This document shows positions 1,320 to 35,866 of a stretch of DNA of 35,866 nucleotides, one piece after another. The stretch is from assembly GCF_041956535.1 (NCBI RefSeq), contig NW_027192230.1:1-35866 (forward strand). Direction: 5' to 3'. The DNA comes from Calcarisporiella thermophila CBS 279.70 (Eukaryota > Fungi > Calcarisporiellomycota). The position numbers and the translations under genes were made by a program. Numbering within the stretch: position 1 is the first letter of the stretch; each line of letters starts with the position of its first letter. Below the pieces are notes generated by a model. That model did no database searches and had not been told where the DNA came from. It saw only the letters and a program-made list of their open reading frames with translations.

Positions 1320-2477
1320 GATGGGCAGCTTCCACAATAAATTCTGAAGCAAACACGTATCCTGAGCAGGAATCTGTAATGGTCAATCAAGGCATTCCAG
1401 AAGTTGCGTTTTCTGTCGGTACACATGCTTGTCTTGGTAGAAATTTGGCTACGCTTGAGCTGCGCTGTTTAATTGCATTGCTAGTTAATGCATTTCATCT
1501 AGAACTCAAAGAAGATAGTGGGATCAACCCTAAAGTCTATCTTACAATGAAGCCGGAGGGTGGAATTTGGATTAATTTCAAGAAACGTCGTTCCAATACC
1601 ACTCTGTAATCTGCAAATGTTACAAATAAATGCAGACAAAATATCAACTCATCTTATTAAATTATAAATATTTGTGCAAATTTAGGTTAATCTGATTTTA
1701 TATGTGATTTATGATTACAGTATTTACACCTAGTACACGGCCCCTACTTTAGTAAAGATCGAGAGCGAAAGTGAAAGAACAATTCCTATCACAACCATAT
1801 TATCAACATTTTGTTCCTATAGTACAATGATGACTCCAGTTTTTCGCAAGATATAAACCGTAGTACTCGGTCAAGTCATCGCGAGAATGGTCATGATCCA
1901 CTATAATATGATTGCGAGCAATGGCTTATAATATAATCCCCGATAGAGAAAAAGAACAATTAAATGATCCGATAGCCTATCTTGGCGTTATGGGAATCTA
2001 CCTTGATTACATTAGATTAGATATTGTTCTTAACTGTTACTTGGTTATATTCTGATTTACTTTTTTTTATGGTTAAAAAATTTGTTGTTAGAAGCAATTT
2101 TAAAAATCCGCTCTGCTCCTTCAACTAACTAGTTCAGCTAACTCCACTTTATAATTTTGATCCCAAAATCAATATTCTAAGTAATTATCATCAAATCAAA
2201 TATTAAACTTCTGCCATATAACAAGGAATTGCCAAAAGCGGACTCTTACAGTAAAAGAGGCTTCTCAAATCTGTGCTAGGGAACCCAATTTGTTTAATAG
2301 TTAATATCGGAAATAAACAATCTGAGCTGATAAATGCTTAGATTTGACCGCGTAATTAAGTACACGTATTCCAAATTGGCCTTCAGTTTTATAAAAGCTC
2401 ATTCGACATTCACAAAGAAATTATCTCCTTCTTTTTCATAATTTCAATTGAATAACATTTTACAGTCAGCCAAAGAT

Positions 2478-4058
2478 ATGGGTGTTCTTTACCTTGATAA
2501 ACTCTCGAATATCCGTGATCGCCTAAGGCCCATTTTATTGGGAGTCTTTTGCGCTGCGCAGATGCTCGATATTATGAATCTTTCTGCCGTAAACATCTTT
2601 CTGCCCCATATGCGCGATGAATTAGGATTCACTGAATCCACATTGCAGTGGGTTGTGAGCGCCTACTCGATCACATTCGGCGGATTGCTTATGTTGGCAG
2701 GCAAATCTGGAGATCTTTTCGGTCATCGTATCATGTTCCTTGTTGGTGTCGCTTGGCTTAGTATTTGGACATTGGTGGCAGGATTGGCTCCTAGTTCTAT
2801 CGTCCTGTGTATTGCGAGAGCTCTTCAGGGTGCAGGAGCGGCTTTTACTGTTCCAACTTCAATGGCATTAATTACAATTACATACAAAGATGAAAAAAAA
2901 AGATCATCTGCTCTTGCATTCTTTGCAGCATTTGGCTCCCTTGGTTTTGTTATAGGCTTGATTCTTGGAGGCGTACTCTCAGGGACCATTGGATGGAGAT
3001 GGGTAACTAATAATATTCCTTGTTATTTTATCCTATAATAGTTAGATAACATATGCTTTCAATGTTTATGCAAATAGTTCTTCTTTATCTCTACGATATT
3101 TGGCGGAATTTTATTTGTGGTTGCTTTTTTGGCTGTTCCTGTCACTCTCCACGATATAGAAAAGGAAGAGAAAGGTACTCGCAGAATTGATTATCCAGGT
3201 GCTTTTACAATTACTACTGGTGTTCTTCTTCTCGTATATGTTTTGATGGACAGCACTTCACTTGGATGGTCTTCACCTCTCATTATCAGCCTTTTTATAG
3301 TTTCTATTCTCTTAATTCTTTTCTTTGTCGGGATAGAATGGAAAATTTCCAATCCACTTATGCCCCTCAAGGTTTGGAAAATACGCAATTTTGCCCCAAT
3401 ATTCATTACCGCTGCTTTAATCTATGGCTATTGGCAAGGATACATGTACTTTGCAACGCTGATCCTGCAGGTCATACTCCGCTACACTCCGATGCAAACG
3501 GCATTGGCATTTCTTCCATTGGGAATCTGTGGCCTCATCTTTAGTTTTCTCGTTGGTAAAATTATTCCACATATGAATCCGAAGATTCTATTAGCAGTAG
3601 GGTTGGCAATTGTCACTGGTTCTGCTGTCATTTTCGCATTTGTGGATGAGAATACCTCCTATTGGCGTCTTCCATTCCCATCATTCGTGCTTAGCCAGCT
3701 GGGTCTTGCATTTAGCTATATCACTGCCAACACAATTGCTGTTTCTGGTGCTAACCCGAGCGATCAAGGACTGGTAGGAGGTCTTTTCAACATGGCATTA
3801 CAGATTGGCGGTGGTATTGGTTTAGCTATTCTTACTGCTATTGCAACCTCTATAAACAATTCAAGTATGGCTACAACTCTGACGGGTGCGCAATTACTTA
3901 AGGGTTATCGTGTTGCTCTATGGTGCTCAGTAGGCTTCACATCTTTGGCTTTAATTGTCGTCTTAGTATTTGTGCGTGGAATTCAAAATACCAACGATGA
4001 CAAGACCAATGTACAGAATAATGAAAACAGGCAAATTTCTTCCGCTGAAAAAGTATAG
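2478..4058 (+). CDS. MFS drug:H+ antiporter, DHA2 (14-TMS) family; 2 exons (2478-3002, 3078-4058)
   Basis: Motif A (GKSGDLFGHR), motif B (ARALQGAG), GLILGGVL-xx-IGWRW. Intron 3003-3077 (GTAACT...AATAG) joins WRW-FFFIS in frame; many hydrophobic helices. Confidence 0.93.
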
Positions 4059-7498: not shown

Positions 7499-8242
7499 TT
7501 AGCATCTCCTCCACTGGAGGCCATTGCTCTGCTTGAATTTGTCAGACAGGGAGTCGATGCTGATGTATCCTCTGGCATTCGATTCTGCTATAATGCGTAT
7601 ATTGGCGTTGATATTGAGATTGCGTGTCTGATTGCAAGGGGACCAATTATCAGATGAAAATCGATCCCGACTCAGATAGCTCTCGTTATATGGACCATCG
7701 AATTCACTCTCGGTCGTAATCTGAGGTGCATTTCCTAGGTAAAAGGTAGCATGTAAAAGTTAGACCCGAGAATATAAGGTATGACTAAAAGTTCAAAGTA
7801 ACTGCATTACTTTAGTCGTACCAGAAAAATAATAGATGCTTGAAGATAAAGCTTTCACTCCCGTGTCCATGCGCACGTATCCCCGTTTGACTGCACCCGG
7901 AATCGAGTATTGCCATCCGTCGGGAACACGAAGGTCGATTGAGACTTGGCAGAACTTACGGTTCTCTGTAGCGTTAACGTTTGGACCATATTGCGCAATG
8001 AACTCGTCGAAATATAGAATAAATTCAGGGGGATTTGGAGACCAGATGGGAGTGACTGTGTGAGGACGACAGCCGCTTCCGTTGTACTTGATATCTAACA
8101 ACTGAACTTGGCCTGGATCCGGTCCATCCTCCTCCCTTTGTTCGATGCGGGCAGGAGCCACGAGTGTAGAGAATGAAAAGATGATCAATATAGCCAGAAA
8201 AATGATTCTGTTCATTATCTGCTTTGCATTCATGAACTCCAT
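7499..8242 (-). CDS. Secreted DUF4360-family protein; 2 exons (intron 7735-7821); start may be 8242, 8233 or 8215
   Basis: Hydrophobic signal peptide; YNGSGC, FDEFIA, RKFCQVSIDL, PDGWQYSI, RGYV, YYFSG. Exon 2 (absent from the ORF track) reads NAPQITTESEFDGPYNESYLSRDRFSSDNWSPCNQTRNLNINANIRI...GYISIDS...LQWRRC*, all typical DUF4360 motifs. Confidence 0.88.
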
Positions 8243-8411
8243 CTCTAAGGTCGCCCTTCTTAAATTAACTGAAGACGAAGAGACTGCTCCTATTGACATT
8301 GGATCACCTAACTTAAAGTACCAACACAAGGTTACACGACCTTTTACAGATTTCTCTTGTAATACTTATGTTCACTTTTGTATTTGTTTTAATTTGTAAG
8401 AAATTCATTAC

Positions 8412-10589: not shown

Positions 10590-11376
10590 ATGGCCACCCC
10601 TAACTTGACGCTCTACACTGCTGCAACCTCCAATGGCCGCAAAGTTTCCGTCACTCTCGAAGAGCTCGGCCTGTCTTACAATGTGAAGCCCATCTCCTTT
10701 GCTCAAAATGAGCAAAAGTCGGAATGGTTCACCAAGATCAATCCAAATGGGCGCATCCCCGCATTGACCGACCACTCCAGGGGTGACTTTAATGTGTTCG
10801 AATCGGGCGCCATCATGATCTACCTGTGCGAACATTACGATCCCGCCGGAAAGCTTTACCCCAAAGATGCAGATGCTCGCTCAGAGGTCTTGCAGTGGCT
10901 TATGTTCCAAATGGGCGGGGTGGGACCAATGCAGGGCCAGGCGAATCACTTTTATAGGTATGCGCCGGAGACGATCGAGTATGGAATTAAGAGATATCAA
11001 AACGAGACAAGGCGGCTCTACGAGGTGATTGAAAGACATCTCTCGGAGGGGAGGGAATGGCTTGCGGGGGGGCAATTCTCTTTGGCAGACATTGCCAATT
11101 TTACATGGTTGGTAATTGGTTCATTGCTTCAGATGCATTGTGGTAAGCATGAGCTTTTCCTATAGGATCCGTGGCCACTCGTGGTCCGGTGTTTCCATTG
11201 ACGGGCTCCCCAATCTCAAGGCATGGCTCGACCGCATCGAATCGCGTCCAGCAGTGCAGCGGGGGTTGGATGTTCCGGAGAAGGATAAGCTGAGACTGTT
11301 GACGAGCAACCCCGAGTTGGCGCAAAAGGCAGCGGAGGCTTCGAGGGCTTGGATTGTTCCGGAGCAACAAAAATAA
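10590..11376 (+). CDS. Glutathione S-transferase, YfcG/Ure2p-like (Nu/GST-II) class; 2 exons (intron 11108-11165)
   Basis: [48 protein letters not shown]. Intron GTTGGT...TATAG restores [12 protein letters not shown]...RPAVQRG. Confidence 0.95.
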
Positions 11377-12827: not shown

Positions 12828-13838
12828 ATGATTTGCCTAGTCATACCGACTTTACTGTTGATTGCGCTCCTCTTTGATGCCGCAAATGCTAGTGGCTATA
12901 TGGTGCAGAGTGCGATGGGAAACAGAGAAATGCTCTATCTTAATTGGGATGGCGATTTCGACGTGGTGGCCCCTGCTTCGGAGAGCGGCCTGCAGCACTG
13001 GTGGCGCCCTTACTCTAACCTGAGCAACCCGAATGCAGTGTCCTGGAGGGGCCCAAAGTATTTTGGGAAAAGCGATGGCAAATTCTTGGGGACAGTTTCT
13101 TTACTCGATATCGGATACGGACAACTCTTTTTGGTTGGCCGTGTGGGTTCTGAGCTGATACAATACTCATTCAGTGGCGGTCAATGGTACAAGCGAGCAA
13201 GAGTTATCTCTGGTGCTTCAGGGTCACCAGCCATGGTTAAAGGTAGGCTTGACCGCCCCCTCAAGCTTGTGGTTCCTCTCAGTACGGGTGGAATAGGCCA
13301 TTACAACCCCAAGTATTCGGAGGAGAAAAACTGGGATGGCCCTCTCGAGTTCGGCAAAAACCTTGGCAATATCGATGCAGTCACCCTCACCCTGATCAAC
13401 AATGGCACTCCGGGAGAACTGAAGGTGATCGCTCGTGTCGGGAACACACTCCACCAATTTTACTACGAAAAATCTCGTTGGTACTACGACGGATTAATTG
13501 CAACAGGGGTGCGGGGTCAACCATCTCTTATCCAGAGTAGTTTTGGGGGAGAAGTCAATTTGTTCGGCCCTCCTTCTATCCAAGGGAATTTTGAACTTAT
13601 TTCCCCTCTTCAAGATGGCGGACTTGGCCACTGGTATCGCGATAATAATTCTCCCTCCAGGCCTTGGCGAGGACCGAAGGTATTTGGCGACTCCCTAGTT
13701 TTCGATGATGTGGCTCTGGTTCAAAACTCCCAAAATCAAAATTTCCTCAATGTAGTTGCACGTTCCAAGGGCACTACCAAGGCTTATTATCGCAATGAGG
13801 CAGGTGTTTGGAACCCCATGCCTGCTCCTGCTCTCTAA
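12828..13838 (+). CDS. Secreted six-bladed beta-propeller, lectin-like protein, paralogue 1 (intronless)
   Basis: Signal peptide ending ANA-SG. Three A blades (V/I-x-P...GL/I-x-H...W-x-GP-x-x-FG) alternate with three B blades (ARVG/GRVG/ARSKG...W). No Cys in the mature chain. Fold and function are inferred from the repeats. Confidence 0.8.
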   Translation: MICLVIPTLLLIALLFDAANASGYMVQSAMGNREMLYLNWDGDFDVVAPASESGLQHWWRPYSNLSNPNAVSWRGPKYFGKSDGKFLGTVSLLDIGYGQLFLVGRVGSELIQYSFSGGQWYKRARVISGASGSPAMVKGRLDRPLKLVVPLSTGGIGHYNPKYSEEKNWDGPLEFGKNLGNIDAVTLTLINNGTPGELKVIARVGNTLHQFYYEKSRWYYDGLIATGVRGQPSLIQSSFGGEVNLFGPPSIQGNFELISPLQDGGLGHWYRDNNSPSRPWRGPKVFGDSLVFDDVALVQNSQNQNFLNVVARSKGTTKAYYRNEAGVWNPMPAPAL

Positions 13839-14445
13839 TGATATCCAAACCATCCAAAGTCGCTTACCTACTGCACCGGAGAACCCAATCTAAATTTTCT
13901 CTTTAAACTTTGATCTCAAAAATCATGCCTCTATCCAGTGTGATCATCTTTTCTAGGTACGCTAGGTACAGGAAATATTTAAATGTACCCATTGTCAATA
14001 TACAGTATGTTTGCTCAGATATGACGTTATCAGCCGTAGTTTGGCTAATTAAAGATTCCCGGATTCTGTACCAAAAGCATCACCAGCTCATTCATATCGA
14101 TATGAACTGGACTAATTGATAGGGGTATACAAGGATGCCGTGCGCGACTCTGTCGAACTGATGGCAGTCGTACGACAATTCATCTACCAGTGCACAATCA
14201 GTTTTGGAATTCCAACCTGAGTTTATATGCTCTCTAATGAAGCATTCATGGTGTTTTATTACCTAGAGTGCATCAATTTCAAAAAACACAAAATTTGACG
14301 CAGAATCAATAGGATTGAATTGTAGGTTTGTATTGTCTTCGAAATCGGAGCTCATAATATGAACTATTGTATATTATACAATCTTGAACCATGTTCCATA
14401 GGCACTCGAACCCTTGTCATATCAGAATTTTGGAGATCGCTCCGA

Positions 14446-14485
14446 ATTAGCCGATGGCAAATAAAGGTTAATTTTCACCTATAAA
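14446..14485 (+). promoter_or_regulatory. Conserved upstream motif plus TATA box of propeller paralogue 2
   Basis: ATTAGCCGATGGCAAATA followed by TATAAA (14480-14485); 17/18 match to the motif upstream of paralogue 3. Confidence 0.55.
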
Positions 14486-14536
14486 TTCCTCTTTCCGCTA
14501 TGGAATAGCTTGTGGCCTATTCTCGTAGACATCGTC

Positions 14537-15511
14537 ATGACTTACCCAATACTATCGATTTTAATTTTGATTGCGTCCCTTTTTACGGGAGCAAATTCCA
14601 GTGGCTACATGGTGCAGAGTAAGATGGTGAGCCGAGAAATCAGCTCCAGTAATATGCGGGGGGATCTTGATGTCGTCGCCCCCGCAACTGGGAGCGGCTT
14701 GCAGCACTGGTGGCGTCGTTCCGGCTCACCTCTCCAGCCTATCTCCTGGAACGGCCCGAACTACTTTGGGGAAAGCGTGGGCAAGTTTTCTGGGTCGGCC
14801 GCGCTCATTGAAAGCAAATATAATAATTTGGAGGTGGTTGCCCGTGTGGACAACCAATTGATGCATTTCTGGCGTGAACATGGTGAATGGCTCAAGGGTC
14901 CCAAGTTCGCCTCTGGGGCCTCTGGATCACCTGCCATGGTTCCAAACAAACCCGGGCGCGATTTTGAACTTGTCGTTCCTCTAAGCAGTGGAGGGATTGG
15001 CCATTATTATCGCAACGACCTGGCGGGCAACAAGTGGTTTGGCCCCGTCGTGTTCGGAAAAGACTTTGACTATGTCAATGCAGTCACGCTTATCAAGGTT
15101 AACGATAATACTCCGGGAGAACTTGAGGTTATCGCTCGGGTTGGGGACACTCTACATCATTTTTGGTACGAAGATGGTGGTTGGCACTATGACAAGCAGA
15201 TTGCAACTGGCGTACGGGGTCAGCCATCTCTCATCCAGAGTTCTATTGGAAGAGAAGGCAATTTTGAACTAGTTTCACCCCTTCAAGAAGGCGGGCTTGC
15301 CCACTGGTATCGTGATAATAAGGTCCCTTCCAAGCCCTGGCGAGGCCCCAATAAATTTGGTGACATGAGGCTGTATGACGACGTATCTCTGATCCAGCGC
15401 GCCGAGAATCCTAAGATCTTCAATGTGATTGCACGCTCCAAGGGAATCACCAAGGCTTTCTCTCGAAATGAGGAGCGCATCTGGGAACCTGAAACTGCTC
15501 CAAATCTTTAG
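14537..15511 (+). CDS. Secreted six-bladed beta-propeller, lectin-like protein, paralogue 2 (intronless)
   Basis: First ATG at 14537 (MTYPILSIL...ANS-SG). Shows the clearest repeats: LEVVARVDNQLMHFWR, FELVVPLSSGGIGHYYRND, LIQSSIGREGNFELVSPLQEGGLAHWYRDN. Cys-free. Confidence 0.82.
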   Translation: MTYPILSILILIASLFTGANSSGYMVQSKMVSREISSSNMRGDLDVVAPATGSGLQHWWRRSGSPLQPISWNGPNYFGESVGKFSGSAALIESKYNNLEVVARVDNQLMHFWREHGEWLKGPKFASGASGSPAMVPNKPGRDFELVVPLSSGGIGHYYRNDLAGNKWFGPVVFGKDFDYVNAVTLIKVNDNTPGELEVIARVGDTLHHFWYEDGGWHYDKQIATGVRGQPSLIQSSIGREGNFELVSPLQEGGLAHWYRDNKVPSKPWRGPNKFGDMRLYDDVSLIQRAENPKIFNVIARSKGITKAFSRNEERIWEPETAPNL

Positions 15512-16875
15512 CAATACCAGACCTGTTTGCACTTTGTCTGGCCATGTAATATAACTTATTGGTATTCTCGATGACTTGCCCATCAAACTAACAACGTCCT
15601 AAAACCAATAAATCCATAGGTAGATAGATACGCCTCAAAAAATCAGCCTCGTGTTTATCTTTATGCTTAGTTGAATCATGCATGCATTTAACGAGCACAA
15701 AATCAACCATTCATTAGTGACGACCGCTTCAGTGATTCCTAAGTAAAATTATTACAATGAATCCTCCTCCGAGAATGAAATTTTGCTCTTTTTATTCTTT
15801 TGTTTTATCAGTAAGATATAGCTAATTAAAGTAAGGTTAACTGATCGAGAGTATAAATTAAAGCTCAGCCAATGAGTTCTAAACCAAAAATAATTGGAAA
15901 CAGAGAGAAAATGACCCATACTAAGATTTATTGAAGGATAACTTAGTCGCCAGAAAATGTAGGCTAATTAGTGTAATTAAAAGTAAAAGATTGATCATTG
16001 CAAACCCCACCCTCATCAATAAATAAACGTAGCTCTCCAGGGTTAATTTTTATCTCTTTGTAAAGGGAAATAAATTATTAACTCAGGTTGCACTTCTTTA
16101 CCATCAGACTTGAATCATCACATTAAACTTAGAATTCCTCCTAATTCTGTTGTCGATGCTTCAAAGGCGAGATGTTTTGCTGCAACAATACCATCGAATT
16201 GACTGAAATTGTGAAGGCATATCTCGGCGCCTGTACTAAGATACGGCTCCTTTCAATGATTGTGAAACAAGCCACAAATTAAAGGAATATTGAGAGTTGG
16301 ATATGGACTCCGAATTCGGCAAAACCTCCAAGAATAGCAAGGCTCAAAAAAATATCTTTTGATGAATGGCTCTCTACCTATGTTATGCCTTCATATAGAA
16401 GTTTAAGATCTTTTAATAACTTAGGCTCTTGCATTTAAATATAAACATTCGAATTGAGCATATCTGGCGGGATCTGTTAATATACTCAATTGAGTGAATA
16501 TATGAAAGATTATCATATATGGTAAGGATTTTTTTTTTCTAATAATAAAAGGAAATTTCACTAGTATTTTCATGAAATAAAAGCCTAGTTTACATCCTGA
16601 AACTAAACAAAAGCATCAAATAATACCACGGTTATGTCTAAAATAAAGATCCATGTGTATTCAAAGTATGCGGAATTGAAGCAAAATATTCAAATCGCAT
16701 TTCATATATAGCCATTTGAAAATAATATTTTTCATTGTACTAATAGAAGGGTCGGATCGAAATATCTTTCCCGAGAACATAATCGAGATTTAAAATCCAA
16801 ACAAAAGATTGGGCTTGTTTTACAAAACTTACTTGTTTTGGACCCATGTAATTTCATCGATTAGGCGATCTTTAC

Positions 16876-16915
16876 ATTAGCCTATGGCAAATACTGGTAA
16901 GAATGCGTATATAAA
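16876..16915 (+). promoter_or_regulatory. Conserved upstream motif plus TATA box of propeller paralogue 3
   Basis: ATTAGCCTATGGCAAATA followed by TATATAAA (16908-16915); similar spacing to the ATG as in paralogue 2. Confidence 0.55.
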
Positions 16916-16964
16916 CACGGTCTTCAATTATTAGGTTTATGACTGACTATACTCACGAGCCATT

Positions 16965-17240
16965 ATGACTTACTCTATAATACCATTCCTATTTTTTACC
17001 TTGTACCTTTTCGTTGCCGTAAACTCAAGCGGTTACATGGCTCAGAGCGCCATGGGAAATAGAATGCAGCTCTATCTTAATTGGGGCGGTGATATTGATG
17101 TAGTTGCTCCCGCTCCGGACAGAGGCCTGCAACACTGGTGGCGTGTTTACTCCGACCTGAGAAATACAAGCTGGAATGGTCCAACCTATTTTGGAGAAAG
17201 CGATGGAAAATTCTTGGGGTCGGTTTCTTAGCTTGATCAC
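16965..17240 (+). pseudogene. Propeller paralogue 3, truncated after blade 1
   Basis: 88 aa closely similar to paralogue 1 (SGYMAQSAMGNR...GLQHWWR...GKFLGSVS). Premature TAG at 17229-17231 where the other copies continue. A LINE fragment follows, and the remaining ~250 codons are not recognisable downstream. Confidence 0.88.
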
Positions 17241-17244
17241 TATG

Positions 17245-18035
17245 TGTATGTATGACGCCCCAATCCTGGCCAGAGGTTGCATCCACGGCAAAGGAATGGG
17301 AAAAGGTCTGGACCTCCATTCTAAAACGGCCAACACTCCCAAAACACCGCACACTACGCTTGCAAATCCTCGTAGAGCGTGTAATTACAAACTCGACATT
17401 CCCTGGTCATGACCCGAAATGTACCCGCTGTAACGCTCCGAGGGACACCATCCGCCACACCTTCTTCGAATGTCCCGAACTCACATCAGTGTGGCATTGG
17501 ACGGAAAGGTGTATCAACACCATCTCAGGTCCCCTAAACACTCAGGTGCTGAGCCCCAGGAACCTCGTACTTGGCGACCTACCAGAAGCCCCAAGGACAG
17601 TAAGACACGCGGCTCAAATCGTCTTCGATTCGGTGCTATGGCAAATCCATCGGGACCGAATCGCCTACCATTTCGAATGCATTCGAGCATCACCCGAGAC
17701 AATCATCCTCCGTGCCAAAATGGACATCGAGGAGGCTATTGGAGCTGAACTGAAAAAGACGAGAGATGGAGTTATTCCGAAGGTGGTGCAGTCAGAGAGC
17801 GGTAATAGAAAGTTCGGATAGAGCAAGACTAAAACTGGAGTGACAAAGCAACCCTTCCTCTCTCCCAATCCGTTCTTTCCCTCCTCCCTCTTTACTTCAT
17901 ATCTTTCACCAAATACCCGATCACTATATACATCTAATTTACCCTTTATTCTCCCCTTTCTTATTTCATTTTAATCATTAAACTCTTGTAAGCTACGGAA
18001 ACTAATAAAAGTCTCCGTTGATTGATCAAAAAAAA
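17245..18035 (+). mobile_element. 5'-truncated non-LTR retrotransposon (L1/Tx1-like): ORF2 C-terminal zf-RVT region, 3' UTR, poly(A)
   Basis: ORF 17252-17821 has W..VW, CX2CX8HX4C (CTRC...HTFFEC..VW) and LWQIHRDR. Pyrimidine-rich 3' UTR, AATAAA at 18004-18009, A8 tail at 18028-18035. The 5' boundary is approximate. Confidence 0.88.
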
Positions 18036-18374
18036 GGGCTTTTATAACCTACTAGCTCTCTGATCCAAAATTACCGTCCAGGTACTGTGAATCAGTTAGA
18101 GAAAACGAACTGTTTCGCGTATACAATGGGCGGAATCAAATCTTGCACTGGATCGACGCATTCTATGGGGATAGTACAGGAATGAATTTACATAACAACG
18201 TAATGACCAAATACGGTATTAGACCGTGTCAAGTATCATATAAGCTTTGGACCCCTGCAATCCTAATCCAATCGATTGTCAATCGCGGAAGGCAAGATGA
18301 AATGGATGTAGAAAAGCGAATATAAAGTGACCCCCGTATACAGGATTTCCCACAATGTATCTTTATAGTTTGCG

Positions 18375-19385
18375 ATGGTCTCCTCAATAGCATCTCTGCT
18401 ACTTTTGTTCGCGACCCTTGTTACCACCTCTAATGCTAGTGGTTATATGGTGCAGAGCGCAATGGAAAACAGGCAAATACTGTTTCTTCATTGGGGTGGC
18501 GATATTGATGTAGTTGCACCGGCAACGGACTGTGGACTGCAGCACTGGTGGCATGTAAATAATAGTCCAAACACTGCTGCTTGGAATGGACCTCGATATT
18601 TTGGAAAAAGTGAGGGAAAATTCTCGGGATCTGTTTCTTTAGTTAATTCTGCCGCAGGAATATTGGACATGGTGGGCTGTGTGGGTTCTGAACTGGTCCA
18701 TTTCACATTCGAAGGCGGTCAATGGTCAATAGTCTCAAGGTTTGCCAATGACATCTCCGGATCACCGGCTATGGATGAAGGAATGTTAAATAGCGGCCAC
18801 AGGTACGATCTCGTAGTTCCCCTCAGCACGGGTGGAATAGGCCACTATTATTATGGTCCTTTAGAACATCCCAGATGGACAGGCCCCTCCGAGTTCGGCA
18901 AGTACCTCGGCAATGTCGATGCCGTCACTCTCGCTAAGAAAAATCAAGACAGTCCCCCACATCTCGAGGTTATCGCTCGAGTTGGAAGCATTCTTCACCA
19001 TTTTCAGTACGATAATACCAGTTGGAATTACCGTGGGATAATCGCAGCTGGTGTGCGCGGCCAACTTTCACTTATCCAGAGTTCTTCCGGTAGCGTAGGC
19101 AAACTTGAATTCGTTTCACCTCTTCAAGATGGCGGGTTAGGTTACTGGTATCTTGATGATAGTTCAATATTTAAAATCTGGCATGGGCCAAAGAGATTCG
19201 GCGACCCAATACTATTCGATGATGTATCTCTGATTCAGTTGACCGATACTCACGATGCAAATATGCCGCGATTTCCGGTAGTCAATGTTAATCTTTATAC
19301 GATTGCACGCTCCAAGAGTAGAACCAAAACCTACAGTCGGAGATATAATGGAGCATGGGTCTCCTGGAATGCTCCAGTTCTTTAA
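18375..19385 (+). CDS. Secreted six-bladed beta-propeller, lectin-like protein, paralogue 4 (intronless)
   Basis: Signal peptide ending SNA-SG; same (AB)x3 repeats; TATAAA at ~18321; several otherwise conserved residues are substituted. Confidence 0.8.
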   Translation: MVSSIASLLLLFATLVTTSNASGYMVQSAMENRQILFLHWGGDIDVVAPATDCGLQHWWHVNNSPNTAAWNGPRYFGKSEGKFSGSVSLVNSAAGILDMVGCVGSELVHFTFEGGQWSIVSRFANDISGSPAMDEGMLNSGHRYDLVVPLSTGGIGHYYYGPLEHPRWTGPSEFGKYLGNVDAVTLAKKNQDSPPHLEVIARVGSILHHFQYDNTSWNYRGIIAAGVRGQLSLIQSSSGSVGKLEFVSPLQDGGLGYWYLDDSSIFKIWHGPKRFGDPILFDDVSLIQLTDTHDANMPRFPVVNVNLYTIARSKSRTKTYSRRYNGAWVSWNAPVL

Positions 19386-23941: not shown

Positions 23942-25620
23942 CTAATGTTGGCAGCGGCCACATGATTGTGTTGGAATAACAAAACCACGGTTGAAGAGAC
24001 AATCTGGATCGTATTTTTCCTTAATCTGGATTAGTCTCTCAAGATTTCCGCGGAATAGATTTTGAATCGGTTCATCATAAATTGCGAAGTTGGAGTAAAG
24101 AGGCTTGTCCTCATTACCTTGACGCAGAATTGAATCTCCCTTACGCATCCATTCCCGCACCGACTCTGTTTGTGAGACATCAGTCCATCGCGGAACTTGA
24201 AGAATGAAATGATTAGCCTTGCTATGCGGATAGGCCGAATCCGTGTCTTTAATTCCGGCGAACGCGCCAGGGAACACTGGCTCAAAGAGGATCGCGCTTT
24301 TTTCAGTACTTGGCACGGCATTGGTAAAATCAACAAAGTGCTTATATGTGTTTTGGATTAGCTCTGGAGTAAGATGAGGGGAAACTGCAGAAGACAGGTA
24401 TTTGTAATCTCCAGCATTCACCATCTCATCCTGGACGGTGTTACCAGTTGCATAGTCCATCTCGGCGGTGGTATCCACAGTGGAATTGATTGCATAAAAT
24501 TCTTTGAATATCTGCTTCGCTTGCTCTTTTGCCCCATCATACCAGATTAAAATGATCGGAGCAGGCTATTGGGTAAGATAAAGTAGACATTATGAAATAG
24601 ATAATATAGGGGTAATTCAAGAATTGAGGCATACCTCAAAATTTGGAGGGGGTTTTGCAAAAATGAGCATGAGATTGGCTTTAGGATCTTTGTTGTTTTC
24701 AAGCCAATTGTACACTAGCTTGGATAGCTCTTCCACTTGATCCTTGGTGTAGAACAGGAATCCAGTAGTGACCGGACCATCTTGTGGGAAGGTTTTGAGC
24801 TCGAATTTAGTTACAACGCCAAACTGATTTCCTCCTCCACGAATCGCAAAGAACAAATCTGTGTTTTCCCTCTCGCTGGCACGGACAATCTCTCCGCTAG
24901 CAAGCACAACTTCGGCCTCAACAAGAACATCTAGATGTAGTTACATCGTGAAAAATATATATATATCTTAACACCCATCATAATCGTATATTTTTTATCA
25001 TATTTGTTAATATCAAATGAGGCCTTACCGCTTGCGAGGTTGTGCTGACCGGTTTTCCATCCATAACCTCCACCTAGTATGAATCCAGCCACCCCAACAT
25101 TTGATACATGCCCGCCTACTGTAGTACGATTAAATTTTATAAGATATTTATCGACCTCTCCCCAACGTGCCCCTGGTCCAAAGACGACAGTCTTGCTCTT
25201 ATCGTTGTATGTGATATTGTTTAAAAGGCCAAGGTCAATCTGCAGCCCACCATTTAACCCACTATAACCTGGGTTGCAACTGTGGCCTCCAGACTTAATG
25301 ACAAAATCAATATTGTTGTTCTTGACATAACGAAGAACCTGCTGAACACCTTCCGCACTTGTAGGCTGGACTATCAATGTGGGGTTGAGTTGCGAGAGGT
25401 CAGACCAGTATTTATTTGCAGCAGCATACTCCTTTGTATCCTGGCGAAGGATTTTTGAGCTGCTGGAAAGCACCTTCTGGATATCCAACTGCATTGCGTG
25501 TTGAACTTGACTGATGAGGCAATTGGATGACAACTGCTGAGATTGTCTTTGCGCAAAACCCATAGATCCAAAAAGTAATGCACATGAAATGACGGTGAAG
25601 ACTATACCTCTTGATATCAT
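23942..25620 (-). CDS. Secreted FAD-binding (FAD_binding_4/BBE-like) oxidoreductase; 3 exons (introns 24931-25028, 24566-24634)
   Basis: Signal peptide; KSGGHS (His for covalent FAD), GPGARW, VGVAGFILGGG, DLFFAIRGGGNQFGVVT; C-terminal BBE motif YSNF...NLERLIQIKEKYDP. Both introns are GT-AG and keep frame. Confidence 0.93.
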
Positions 25621-28546: not shown

Positions 28547-29663
28547 CACTATGTGCTGTTCCAACCGCTACCCCGGTTATAAATGCATTTTCTAAAATAC
28601 CATGGGTATTAATATAGATGCTCCGGAAAAATGGCCTTCATGATAAAATTGAAGACATATTTATTATCGTTATTTCACAAAAATATTTTAATACTTCGTA
28701 TATCCTCCTCTAGCTTTATAAACAGCTCGGAATCTCCTCAACATACTCTCGTATAGGTTATCAATATAAATCTTTTCTATATTCTCCCACGTGTATTTGA
28801 TTCGTTCCCAGAGCTCTTCCCTATCCTTTGGCCGAGTAGGATAATCTTGAAGCCTCCTCTTCAAGAGGCCCCACGCGTTTTCTATGGGATTCAAATCTGG
28901 TGATTGAGCAGGCCATTCTAAGACCCTTATATTGCGATCTCGCAGTCACGCTTGAGTTGACTTGGTGATGTGAGGGGGGGCGTTATCAAGTTGGAATACG
29001 ATCTTGTCCTTGTCTATCCCGTACCGTTCGAGTGTTCCAAGAAAACCCTCATCTAAAATGATCTGATACATCCTAGCATTTATTCCGCCTTTCACGCGAA
29101 GTAGAAGTCCAACTCCTTGCGAAGTAATGCAGCCCCATACCATGATTGCCTCTTTTCCCTGTTTCGTGGTAGGAATGATATTGCACTCACGCAGAGGCTG
29201 TCCCTTCTTTACGTATGTGTATTCCTTCCCGTGGTCTGTAAAAAGGGTACAATGGTTTCATCCGAGGATATTATGGTTTCAATGGTCTGAAAATCCCATC
29301 TAACAAGTTGAGCTGTGAATTTGAATCGAGTTTTAAAATGGCGCGGGAGCAGCAAAAGCTTCCTAGGCTTTGATTGAGGCTTTACTTCGTGATGTCTGAG
29401 CATCATTTTTACAGTTTTGTTTGTTACGCTCTTATTGAGCTCTTCTTTGATAACTTGCTGCAAGTCGGCAAGCTTAGAACACTCTCCGGTTGACGCCTCC
29501 TTAGCGATATATTTCTCATCTGATTCACATAGACTACGTGGACGACCATATTTTGGCTTCATAGGAGGATATTTCGGGGTGTTCCATTCCTTGATGATCT
29601 TTCTGGCAGTTTCACGGCTTATTCCTATTCGTGCTGCAACCTTACGTGTGGACTCTCCCTTTC
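28547..29663 (-). mobile_element. Tc1/mariner (DD34E) DNA transposon, inactive; 5' end lies in the assembly gap
   Basis: HTH (STRKVAARIGIS), GRPR, SDE, MVWGC, DNAPPH, WPAQSPDLNPIEN with 34 residues between D and E, GGYTKY*. Frameshift near 29240 and in-frame TGA at 28946-28948. Probable terminus TA|CACTATGTGC at 28545-28556. Confidence 0.92.
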
Positions 29664-30312
29664 NNNNNNNNNNNNNNNNNNNNNNNNNNNNNNNNNNNNN
29701 NNNNNNNNNNNNNNNNNNNNNNNNNNNNNNNNNNNNNNNNNNNNNNNNNNNNNNNNNNNNNNNNNNNNNNNNNNNNNNNNNNNNNNNNNNNNNNNNNNNN
29801 NNNNNNNNNNNNNNNNNNNNNNNNNNNNNNNNNNNNNNNNNNNNNNNNNNNNNNNNNNNNNNNNNNNNNNNNNNNNNNNNNNNNNNNNNNNNNNNNNNNN
29901 NNNNNNNNNNNNNNNNNNNNNNNNNNNNNNNNNNNNNNNNNNNNNNNNNNNNNNNNNNNNNNNNNNNNNNNNNNNNNNNNNNNNNNNNNNNNNNNNNNNN
30001 NNNNNNNNNNNNNNNNNNNNNNNNNNNNNNNNNNNNNNNNNNNNNNNNNNNNNNNNNNNNNNNNNNNNNNNNNNNNNNNNNNNNNNNNNNNNNNNNNNNN
30101 NNNNNNNNNNNNNNNNNNNNNNNNNNNNNNNNNNNNNNNNNNNNNNNNNNNNNNNNNNNNNNNNNNNNNNNNNNNNNNNNNNNNNNNNNNNNNNNNNNNN
30201 NNNNNNNNNNNNNNNNNNNNNNNNNNNNNNNNNNNNNNNNNNNNNNNNNNNNNNNNNNNNNNNNNNNNNNNNNNNNNNNNNNNNNNNNNNNNNNNNNNNN
30301 NNNNNNNNNNNN
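29664..30312. other. Assembly gap (N run)
   Basis: 649 consecutive N. Confidence 1.
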
Positions 30313-30383: not shown

Positions 30384-32208
30384 TCAGTGTTGCACAATGT
30401 ATTCGAGCATTGTCAAAACGGCTTTAAGAAGGCTTTCACCGGAAGGGATAATTTTTGAGGGAGGAAGGACAAAGCTGTTTCCTTCAAGTTCAATAAGAAA
30501 TGCGTATGGTACTTTTCCGGCTATTCGTGAATGGATTTATCAATTTACTACCTGCAGCTTCTATGTTGGATTACATTAAAAATTAGATTGCACTTACGGC
30601 CAGTTGCCCAATCAATTGACATTCCAATCCCTTTACTTCCCGCGCTGCACATTTTAGTAGGCTTAAAGGGTGCAACATCAATTGCTTTAGCAGTTTGTTT
30701 AGCGCATTCCTCTAATTTTTTTGCGGTTGGTGTGTTCTAAAATAACTCCTTTTAGTGCAAGTTTGCTAAATACGGGCATCTACACTTACTCCATTACATC
30801 CTGGGCCAAATGTATACATCACTATATGTAAAGATATATAATATTTATCTGATAAATTAGATATATATCATACAATCTTCGGCTACTCACCCAGTTGGCC
30901 ATATGAATGGAAATCGATATAAGCGGTAGCATTTTTCTCTTTGATGAAATTTGCAATATTTTTTGTTTCGGGTGCTGAGAAAGGCTTGGATCCAAAGTAA
31001 GCTAAAAAAAGAGAGTCTTAACAAATGAAACTGTAAATACGTATTATACTAAAATACCTACTTTCGTCACATGGGTTATTAGAAGCTCCTCCCCACCCTG
31101 CATCCTAATTTATAATGAAAGTGCAATAGAAATTGTTAACTGTTTATTCTTTAAACTATATACGCATCCTTACCCAATTACGGTTGTTATCGGTACCAAC
31201 ACAATTTGAACCAGTGTTAGGTTGTCGGTTCTTTCTCCACTATAAATAAATAATAATCTACAATAAACCTATTTTAGCTAAAAGCATTATAATTTTACCA
31301 TACGCTCTTTTGTAAAAGTGTAATGGTATCCATCTGCATTCAAAACTGGGATTGCATATATATCAAATAAATCTACAACCTTAGTAATGCGATCATCTTT
31401 TCCGTACAATCCCGCCAGTGCATTCAAGATATAAGTGGCTGTGGCCTAAAAAGCGCGTCATTAGTTTGTATATGTAAATACTTACCTTTTCTTGGTAAAT
31501 CATATCTTACCGGAGATATCCATTCTCGGGCGTGTTGTCCACCATGATATACAAACCTATATTTGGGATTCTTGCCTTTGATTCTTAAACCGGTTTGATC
31601 CCTACCCTCATAAGTTTTTCCAATACTAAACACTTCGGTGTGATTGGGGTAATCTTGGTTGAGTTTCTTAACCAGCTGCGTAAGCTCCTCGTAAGTGCGA
31701 TATTTTTTGAAAAATTCGAGGTTTGGTGGATTAGCGCTTAATTGCGTGGTAAATTTACCACTCTCCTTCACCATTTGTGATTCTGTAATTGCCTGTTGCA
31801 AGTCTTCAATCTTGACGGAGATTGGGGATTGGATCTCACTTTGCACACCAGTGATGAACTCAGATGGAACGCGTACATCGACTTTTCCAATTTGAGGCAC
31901 AGTCCATTCATCGAGATGATATTTCTTTAATATTTTTTTGTAATATTATATATGTGACTTGGTTTTAGTACCTAATTCTAACTGCTCTTTTTGTTTACCT
32001 TAATAACATTTTGCAATTGCTTTAGCTCGCCTTCATTACGCACGTTGATCGTGAAGACCTGATGGCCTTTATACGTGATGGGCCTAATTGGATTTGTGTA
32101 CTTTTTTACTACTTTACTAATTTGCTGTTGGGTCAATGCTTGTGCAGCCACAGCAGTAGCGCCCATCATTAATATTAATGTGTAAACAAAAAATTGATTG
32201 GCCTTCAT
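30384..32208 (-). CDS. Secreted M14A zinc carboxypeptidase (CPA-like) with propeptide; ~9 exons
   Basis: Signal peptide and propeptide; GGQHAREWISP, PVLNADGY, WRKNR, DNNRNW, DFHSYGQL, SIDW, AFLIEL. The last exon ends ...EYIVQH* (TGA at 30384-30386). Exons joined by GT-AG introns. Confidence 0.93.
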
Positions 32209-33487: not shown

Positions 33488-35217
<1,730 letters not shown>

Positions 35218-35866
35218 TTCTTAATTAATAAAATGAAATAAAAGAATCAATAATTAAGCAAAGTATTGGAAATATGAGTATTTATATAATTTTTTTCAAG
35301 TATTTAAAATATTATATCGATCATTTGTATAGAAACAGGCAAAATATGTATTTTCCCAGAAAATAAGCTAGCTTCAACAGATCTTCGATTAAAATCTCTA
35401 AACATGAAAGATATTTCGAACTTTATTAGCAAATTTTTGACTTAGTTTATGTTATATTATCATGAGTTTTGTTACAATTGCATAATGAATCAATTTAATT
35501 GAGGTAATTGAAGTGATAATTAAATAACGATTTTTAAAACTAAAGATGATAGAAAATATACAGCTTTGATAAGCAAATTTAATTTCTCAACCAATATCTA
35601 TCTTTTATTTTGAAGGATAGTTATGTTTGTTATTTTAATTATATTCATCTAAATATGTAGATGAACCACATTTCTAAAGACGGAGCTAATTGTATTTGAA
35701 ATGACACACTGAGAAACTCTGAATTTTGGCCAAAGAGAAAGAAATAAAAAAAAACAATGTCGTTTGCTATTCCTATTAAAAATTATATAATCATCATATG
35801 CGCATAAGAAAATCTGAACTTTATACAAAACTTATAAAATTACTTTTTTTTATTAGCACACATTTT

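Follow-up and report, generated by a model that had tools for sequence, protein, structure and literature searches.

The propeller gene array

A tandem array of four genes for beta-propeller proteins with predicted signal peptides was analysed in the early-diverging fungus Calcarisporiella thermophila CBS 279.70 (Calcarisporiellomycota; RefSeq assembly GCF_041956535.1, 28 Mb in 116 contigs). The array lies at positions 12828–19385 of the window, by which the whole stretch of DNA under analysis is meant, namely the first 35.9 kb (35,866 nucleotides) of contig 40 (NW_027192230.1). As had been claimed in an earlier note made from the letters of the sequence, this interval contains four co-oriented paralogues on the forward strand, three of them intact (g1, g2 and g4, with open reading frames (ORFs) of 336, 324 and 336 amino acids) and one broken (g3, of which residues 1–94 are left); coordinates are collected in Table 1. 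The intact copies share 51–54% amino acid identity and about 65% DNA identity in pairwise comparison (tblastn E values of 1e-95 to 1e-114, far past chance), and their flanks show no homology among one another; the duplicates are therefore old, not recent. The ratio of non-synonymous to synonymous substitution rates (dN/dS), calculated by the method of Nei and Gojobori (NG86), was 0.21–0.30 among the three copies (0.27–0.30 for g1 against g2 and g4, 0.21–0.27 for g4) with saturated synonymous divergence (dS of at least 1), which shows that g1, g2 and g4 are under purifying selection.

Each of the three intact copies consists of one uninterrupted ORF that is colinear from the first to the last blade with intronless bacterial homologues, and on this reading of the genomic sequence the genes appear to be intronless, as the earlier note had described them. 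The public model of g1 (VTP21DRAFT_8843, 329 amino acids) departs from this: it leaves the ORF after residue 284 (nucleotide 13679, followed by GT), shifts the frame and loses blade 6. Because the uninterrupted reading is conserved with g2, g4 and a further copy on contig 16 described below, the modelled intron is probably spurious.

A hydrophobic leader, some 21 residues long, opens all four copies; its last residues are ANA, ANS, VNS or SNA, and a conserved SGYM(V/A)QS follows immediately. By inspection, the end of the leader would be a classical (-3,-1) signal-peptidase site, with small residues at -3 and -1 before SGYM, and in the AlphaFold2 (AF2) models of g2 and g4 the N-terminus is a helix of low confidence. 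Mature g1 and g2 contain no cysteine, as noted before, and g4 contains two (C53 and C102); N-glycosylation sequons number three in g1 and two in g4 and are absent from g2.

Fold and family

In the AF2 models of g2 (pLDDT 87.4, pTM 0.85) and g4 (pLDDT 86.9, pTM 0.87) six four-stranded blades are closed by the N-terminal strand, and g4 carries a floppy insert at about residues 291–304. The six repeats follow an alternating (AB)x3 pattern, and in a 66-sequence alignment a Trp is invariant in five of the six. The top 22 Foldseek matches were the seven-bladed Photorhabdus lectins PLL, PLL2–5 and PHL (E values of 5e-11 to 1e-9, TM-score about 0.65, identity 15–20%), so that the lectin-like propeller proposed earlier was borne out by the predicted structures; the six-bladed fold can also be superposed on AAL and RSL.

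The DUF346 repeat (PF03984) was the sole Pfam finding for the propeller copies, and g2 was the only one above threshold (28.6 bits in three stretches, gathering cut-off 22). The database record for g2 lists PF03984 only, and many of its close homologues carry PF26607 (Beta-prop_PLL), as do the nearest ESM Atlas clusters, which are named 'PLL-like beta propeller' and are 75–100% bacterial or archaeal. In homologues and Atlas clusters this domain often shares a polypeptide with C1, M23 or M64 peptidases, with an Rv2525c-like glycoside-hydrolase-like domain or with tachylectin. Searches with Fungal_lectin (PF07938) gave no match at E ≤ 1 for any copy, and NCBIfam gave matches far below threshold only ('beta propeller lectin', 28.6 bits against a cut-off of 200). 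On the basis of the models, the window proteins are best described as stand-alone six-bladed propellers of the PLL-like / DUF346 superfamily, whose similarity to the solved PLL and PHL chains is structural only. Neither sequence searches of the PDB nor the literature searched yielded a characterised member of the six-bladed subfamily, and the proteins thus did not turn out to belong to a family already characterised.

Fucose and O-methylated sugars are ligands of the PLL family, whose binding sites lie between the blades (PMC6943638). With the Photorhabdus proteins (PF03984/PF26607) the window proteins share the repeat family and an all-beta propeller of about 340 amino acids; they differ in having six blades instead of seven and in the (AB)x3 pattern, which PLL lacks, and they are fungal with a predicted signal peptide, whereas the Photorhabdus lectins are bacterial and cytoplasmic or released. 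With the group of AAL, AFL (FleA), AOL, AofleA, SapL1 and RSL (PF07938) only the six-bladed fold is held in common and homology is not demonstrated: identity is 9–13%, and the Arg/Glu/Trp fucose triad of that group lies on other strands than the Glu and Trp-Arg motif of the proteins studied here.

Distribution of homologues

After its own paralogues, the best matches to the g2 protein were prokaryotic or metagenomic with 33–44% identity, including Methanotrichaceae and Chloroflexota, and among the named matches in the best 120 of 171 the only other fungus was Aspergillus pseudoviridinutans (P0104). Broadly distributed fungal orthologues were accordingly not encountered, the named fungal matches being limited to C. 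thermophila and this one Aspergillus. An exhaustive search returned 1,117 representatives of 50%-identity clusters at E ≤ 0.001, 206 of them below 1e-30, and the ten best that were looked up came from metagenomes or bacteria without exception. A scan of prokaryotes with one genome per species yielded 144 loci in more than 10 phyla (Actinomycetota, Acidobacteriota, Gemmatimonadota, Chloroflexota, Cyanobacteriota, Bacillota, Myxococcota and others, as well as Methanothrix). The family is overwhelmingly prokaryotic.

As a rival reading, the family could be an old fungal one that was passed on vertically and disappeared nearly everywhere, or it could have moved from fungi into bacteria. In favour of this, sequencing of early-diverging fungi is sparse, the genome collection scanned consisted of prokaryotes alone, and the coding GC content of the fungal genes (0.46–0.54) is fungal-like, that of the closest bacterial gene being 0.67. 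Against this stand the position of the fungal sequences as a small tip clade inside a prokaryotic diversity that includes archaea, a complete two-domain architecture common to bacteria and the contig-16 protein (see below), the lack of introns in all five copies within an intron-rich genome, and a published survey in which DUF346 lectins were reported in Dikarya only and not in Mucoromycota (PMC10481521), with the sole Aspergillus homologue in a different clade. Vertical descent and the reverse transfer are therefore considered very improbable.

The Aspergillus protein falls into a separate, well-supported clade with sequences from Planctomycetota, Actinomycetota and Acidobacteriota, a placement that suggests an independent acquisition in Dikarya. 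In the stand-alone archaeal members (P0005, P0004 and the Methanothrix loci L012, L021 and L028) a Lys/Arg-rich low-complexity N-terminal extension of about 55–70 residues was observed in place of a signal peptide; these proteins form a tight Methanotrichaceae clade, and several of the genomes hold more than one copy.

An oxidase-propeller fusion on contig 16

A fifth genomic copy of the propeller was located on contig 16 in VTP21DRAFT_3128, where it forms the C-terminal 310 residues behind an N-terminal enzyme made up of Glyoxal_oxid_N, Kelch and galactose-oxidase-like (GO-like) E-set domains; the oxidase part is GlxA-like by NCBIfam, below threshold. Over its full length this protein is 50–60% identical to about 20 proteins of the same two-part architecture, of which the named ones are bacterial (metagenome-assembled genomes of Mycobacteriales and Acidimicrobiales), and other fungi were absent from its top 120 matches. 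The closest homologue (P0272) is encoded on a contig with a GC content of 0.68 by a gene with a GC content of 0.67 that adjoins LysR, GerE, recombinase and WS/DGAT genes; VTP21DRAFT_3128 itself has a GC content of 0.54 and is surrounded by fragmented intron-type ORFs on a contig of 737 kb. Judged from its sequence and architecture, VTP21DRAFT_3128 is itself a strong candidate for horizontal gene transfer (HGT) and the likely parent of the array.

The relationship was examined in three trees, for which no root was inferred. In a 60-row tree the window copies formed one clade, sister to the contig-16 domain and nested in prokaryotes, and the Aspergillus protein stood apart. When bacterial fused propellers were included (95 rows), the four fungal sequences formed one clade (Shimodaira–Hasegawa-like approximate likelihood ratio test (SH-aLRT) 94), whose sister group was a pair of bacterial fused proteins (SH-aLRT 99) that are 57–60% identical to VTP21DRAFT_3128 over the full length. 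In a 47-row maximum-likelihood (ML) tree, the clade of window copies had a support, as ultrafast bootstrap (UFBoot)/SH-aLRT, of 100/100; monophyly of the fungal sequences was supported at 99/92, and their grouping with the two bacterial fused proteins at 100/99. The earlier proposal that a bacterial gene had been captured and amplified locally is upheld by this nesting in prokaryotes; what has to be revised is the nature of the captured gene, which was most probably an oxidase-propeller fusion and not a stand-alone lectin.

Shared characters point to the same relationship. The stretch over which the window proteins are homologous to the fusion starts within the interdomain linker, which reads LAPAANSSGWLIQS in the contig-16 protein, LAPAASS(T/S)G in the bacterial proteins and (A/G/V/S)N(A/S)SGYM(V/A)QS in the window copies; the linker Asn (AAN-x-SG) occurs in the fungal sequences only, Ser taking its place in bacteria. 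A C-terminal ARS...KAY.RN motif is common to the contig-16 domain and the window copies. Alternatively, two separate transfers could have taken place, with the array going back to a propeller gene, stand-alone or truncated separately, of a bacterium near the fusion donor. In an approximately unbiased (AU) test, a topology that places the contig-16 domain with the bacterial pair to the exclusion of the window copies was disfavoured but not rejected (p = 0.066), the stem branch of the array is long (0.64–0.73 substitutions per site), and stand-alone propellers are common in prokaryotes, all of which would be compatible with a second transfer. On the other hand, the ML tree unites the window copies with the contig-16 domain, the linker Asn and C-terminal motif are common to both, homology starts exactly in the linker of the fusion, and among the sampled sequences no stand-alone prokaryotic protein falls within the six-member clade of the fungal and two bacterial fused proteins. 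Two transfers are thus regarded as unlikely; since the AU test of fungal monophyly was not significant, a single transfer is favoured but not proven.

Changes after the proposed release from the enzyme

Compared with the bacterial GlxA-like fusions (for example P0272, the Mycobacteriales protein P0280 and the Acidimicrobiales protein P0222) and VTP21DRAFT_3128, which are the nearest propeller relatives and share the six-bladed (AB)x3 arrangement and a homologous linker, the window proteins are without the oxidase and E-set domains, carry a predicted signal peptide and have lost most copies of a blade motif. The leader stands at the position of the last strand of the E-set domain, and the former linker supplies the predicted cleavage site. 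An 8-residue insert in blade 1 is present in all window copies, and a further insert of 11 residues in blade 6 is found in g4.

The blade motif (E/W-R) consists of a Glu (GNFE or GNLE) and a Trp-Arg pair (xWRD) in each blade. It is kept in five to six of the six blades in three of the four bacterial and archaeal relatives compared, in three blades of P0280 and in five of the contig-16 domain. Within the array the full triad remains in a single blade of g2, where three more blades have a conservative substitution at one of the three positions, and in no blade of g1 or g4. The distal invariant Trp, which was mapped in four blades, is kept in four of four in every intact copy. Such erosion may reflect a smaller number of sites, a change to new specificities or a role that does not involve glycans.

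The last of these would correspond to a scaffold that was kept while its lectin role disappeared. The propellers would then have been retuned to bind proteins or ligands of another kind, and might for instance inhibit competitors, act on them as effectors or form structural components of the wall. Such a change would fit the erosion of a motif near-universal in bacterial blades, the accelerated evolution on the array stem and the inserts common to all copies and private to g4, and the dN/dS values of 0.2–0.3 imply that some function has been maintained. It is opposed by the retention of the distal Trp and by the fact that all relatives characterised by fold are lectins or glycan-processing enzymes; moreover, motif erosion is no proof of lost sugar binding. 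A non-lectin role is considered rather unlikely, and a secreted glycan-binding function, suggested by fold, family and domain context only, would be the most likely mechanism, a view held with modest confidence.

The broken copy

What is left of g3 runs from the predicted signal peptide through blade 1 into the beginning of blade 2, and is 65% identical in amino acid sequence to g1 over residues 1–94 (tblastn). Directly after residue 94, the place of the g3 body is taken by the 5'-truncated 3' end of a non-long-terminal-repeat (non-LTR) retrotransposon (LINE, long interspersed nuclear element), in which a zf-RVT domain was recognized by Pfam (30.7 bits). Elsewhere in this genome, on many contigs, the fragment was matched at 65 or more places with 89–96% identity; the matches vary in their 5' ends and share one 3' end, which is the signature of 5'-truncated copies of a non-LTR retrotransposon. 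Since no remnant of the g3 body was found downstream by tblastn, the insertion was accompanied or followed by a deletion. The LINE family is young and abundant, with at least 65 copies, mostly 5'-truncated.

Genomic setting

The array lies among ordinary fungal genes that are split by introns (MFS, BBE oxidase, M14, subtilase and cytochrome P450; Table 1).

Table 1. Positions of the propeller genes and other features; positions refer to the window except for the fusion gene on contig 16
Feature	Position	Strand	Remarks
g1	12828..13838	+	336 aa; intact six-bladed propeller gene; predicted signal peptide at about codons 1–21; NCBI VTP21DRAFT_8843
g2	14537..15511	+	324 aa from the first ATG; intact; repeats best preserved
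g3	16965..17237	+	5' remnant, residues 1–94; ORF stops at 17231
LINE fragment	17253..18035	+	3' end of a non-LTR retrotransposon, 5'-truncated; in place of the g3 body; contains zf-RVT ORF 17252–17821
g4	18375..19385	+	336 aa; intact; E/W-R blade motif most eroded; 11-residue blade-6 insert; two Cys
Oxidase-propeller fusion VTP21DRAFT_3128	G000:C16:478970–481375 (L004:1465–3870)	-	801 aa; single ORF; intronless; leaderless
P450 exons	131–1606
MFS transporter	2448–4058
DUF4360	7793–8329
Glutathione S-transferase (GST)	10590–11165
BBE-type FAD oxidase	23942–25620
M14 carboxypeptidase	~31427–31945
Subtilase with I9 propeptide	33491–35220

The GC content of the propeller genes (0.46–0.51) exceeds that of the M14 and subtilase exons (0.39–0.40), as the earlier note had stated for the protease genes, but they are no outliers: MFS and BBE exons have 0.41–0.455, DUF4360 has 0.45 and the GST gene reaches 0.51 as well. 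Intergenic DNA is AT-rich (GC content 0.33–0.39), and the visible contrast is mostly one of coding against AT-rich intergenic DNA. GC content was therefore rejected as a signal of HGT, the propeller genes lying within the range of the neighbouring fungal exons, at its upper end. Of the local coding sequences, that of the GST gene beside the array is the richest in GC, with 0.61 at third codon positions (GC3); ORFs continue to about 11880, and the stretch at 11–12 kb has a GC content of 0.53–0.60. A run of 649 N occupies positions 29664–30312, and ORFs across it are artefacts, among them a Tc1-like ORF with 18% GC that was discarded for this reason; a match to a Tc1/Tc3-type transposase helix-turn-helix (HTH) domain flanks the run at 29212–29663 (reverse strand).

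The bacterial-looking affinity of the protein family could in principle reflect an assembly artefact or bacterial contamination. The genes, however, lie mid-contig (about 109 kb) between intron-split eukaryotic genes, one copy is broken by a LINE that is repeated throughout the genome, and GC content and third codon positions fit the fungus and not its high-GC bacterial relatives. This explanation was rejected as next to impossible, and the flanking genes together with the LINE inside the array document integration into the fungal genome.

Discussion

The history that we favour, with moderate confidence, is that a bacterial fusion gene was transferred once and that its propeller module was later copied, gained a leader and was amplified in tandem, giving rise to secreted multivalent carbohydrate-binding proteins. 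From the trees and the architecture, the donor would have been a bacterium, probably an actinobacterium, with an intronless gene for a GlxA-like copper-radical oxidase with a C-terminal six-bladed propeller, and the donated fusion would persist on contig 16 as VTP21DRAFT_3128. The 3' part coding for the propeller may later have been copied to contig 40, starting in the interdomain linker (AAN-S/A-SG), whereby the former linker would have become a signal-peptidase site behind a new hydrophobic leader and a leaderless enzyme module a secreted protein. Old tandem duplications (at the saturated dS given above) would have produced four copies, one of which was presumably ruined later by LINE insertion and deletion. 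The mature proteins may bind carbohydrates multivalently in sites between the blades, as in the PLL, AAL and RSL lectins, with glycans of other microbes or of the fungus's own wall as possible targets, and to judge from the erosion of the E/W-R motif, g1 and g4 may have fewer sites or sites that were retuned. The roles in glycan recognition, adhesion or defence put forward in the earlier note would likewise follow from fold and family.

Several observations weigh against this history or against the function assigned in it. In addition to the AU test and to the near-complete loss of the triad, which may mean that ligand binding was lost or changed, no PDB chain was found by sequence, neither with g2 in phmmer nor with a profile of the 66 sequences in hmmsearch (E ≤ 1 to 10). 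For g1, g3 and g4 the DUF346 matches are below threshold (13.9–16.3 bits), a point that bears on the intact g1 and g4, and membership of these copies follows from their 51–56% identity to g2. The bacterial fused proteins and VTP21DRAFT_3128 are without a leader, and the ancestral module may thus never have met extracellular glycans. Eukaryotes were sampled via protein databases alone, and unsequenced or unannotated early-diverging fungi may hold relatives.

In bacteria-derived xenologues of early-diverging fungi, duplication after transfer and loss of domains are both common (PMC11291939). The propeller genes resemble these in their lack of introns, bacterial affinity, post-transfer duplication and domain loss; the survey differs in scope, covering 44 early-diverging fungi without Calcarisporiella and mentioning no propeller lectin or galactose-oxidase-like xenologue. 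A further step can be proposed tentatively, and with more doubt than belief: that the module was liberated after HGT, with its linker turned into a signal-peptidase site and its blade sites eroded or retuned, and so became a fungus-specific secreted recognition family with specificities absent in the bacterial parents.

On the favoured history, the array would be a clean, datable case of a horizontally acquired bacterial gene seeding a secreted protein family in an early-diverging fungus, by transfer of a two-domain enzyme of which one module was then copied, provided with a leader derived in part from the old linker, and amplified. The finding further draws attention to a six-bladed (AB)x3 branch of the PLL-like superfamily that is large and uncharacterised: its cluster representatives exceed 1,000, and fusions to peptidases, oxidases or glycoside-hydrolase-like domains are frequent among them. 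The copies from this thermophile are small, g1 and g2 are free of cysteine and g2 is free of sequons, which would make them convenient for recombinant expression and glycan-array profiling and possibly suitable as heat-stable glycan probes.

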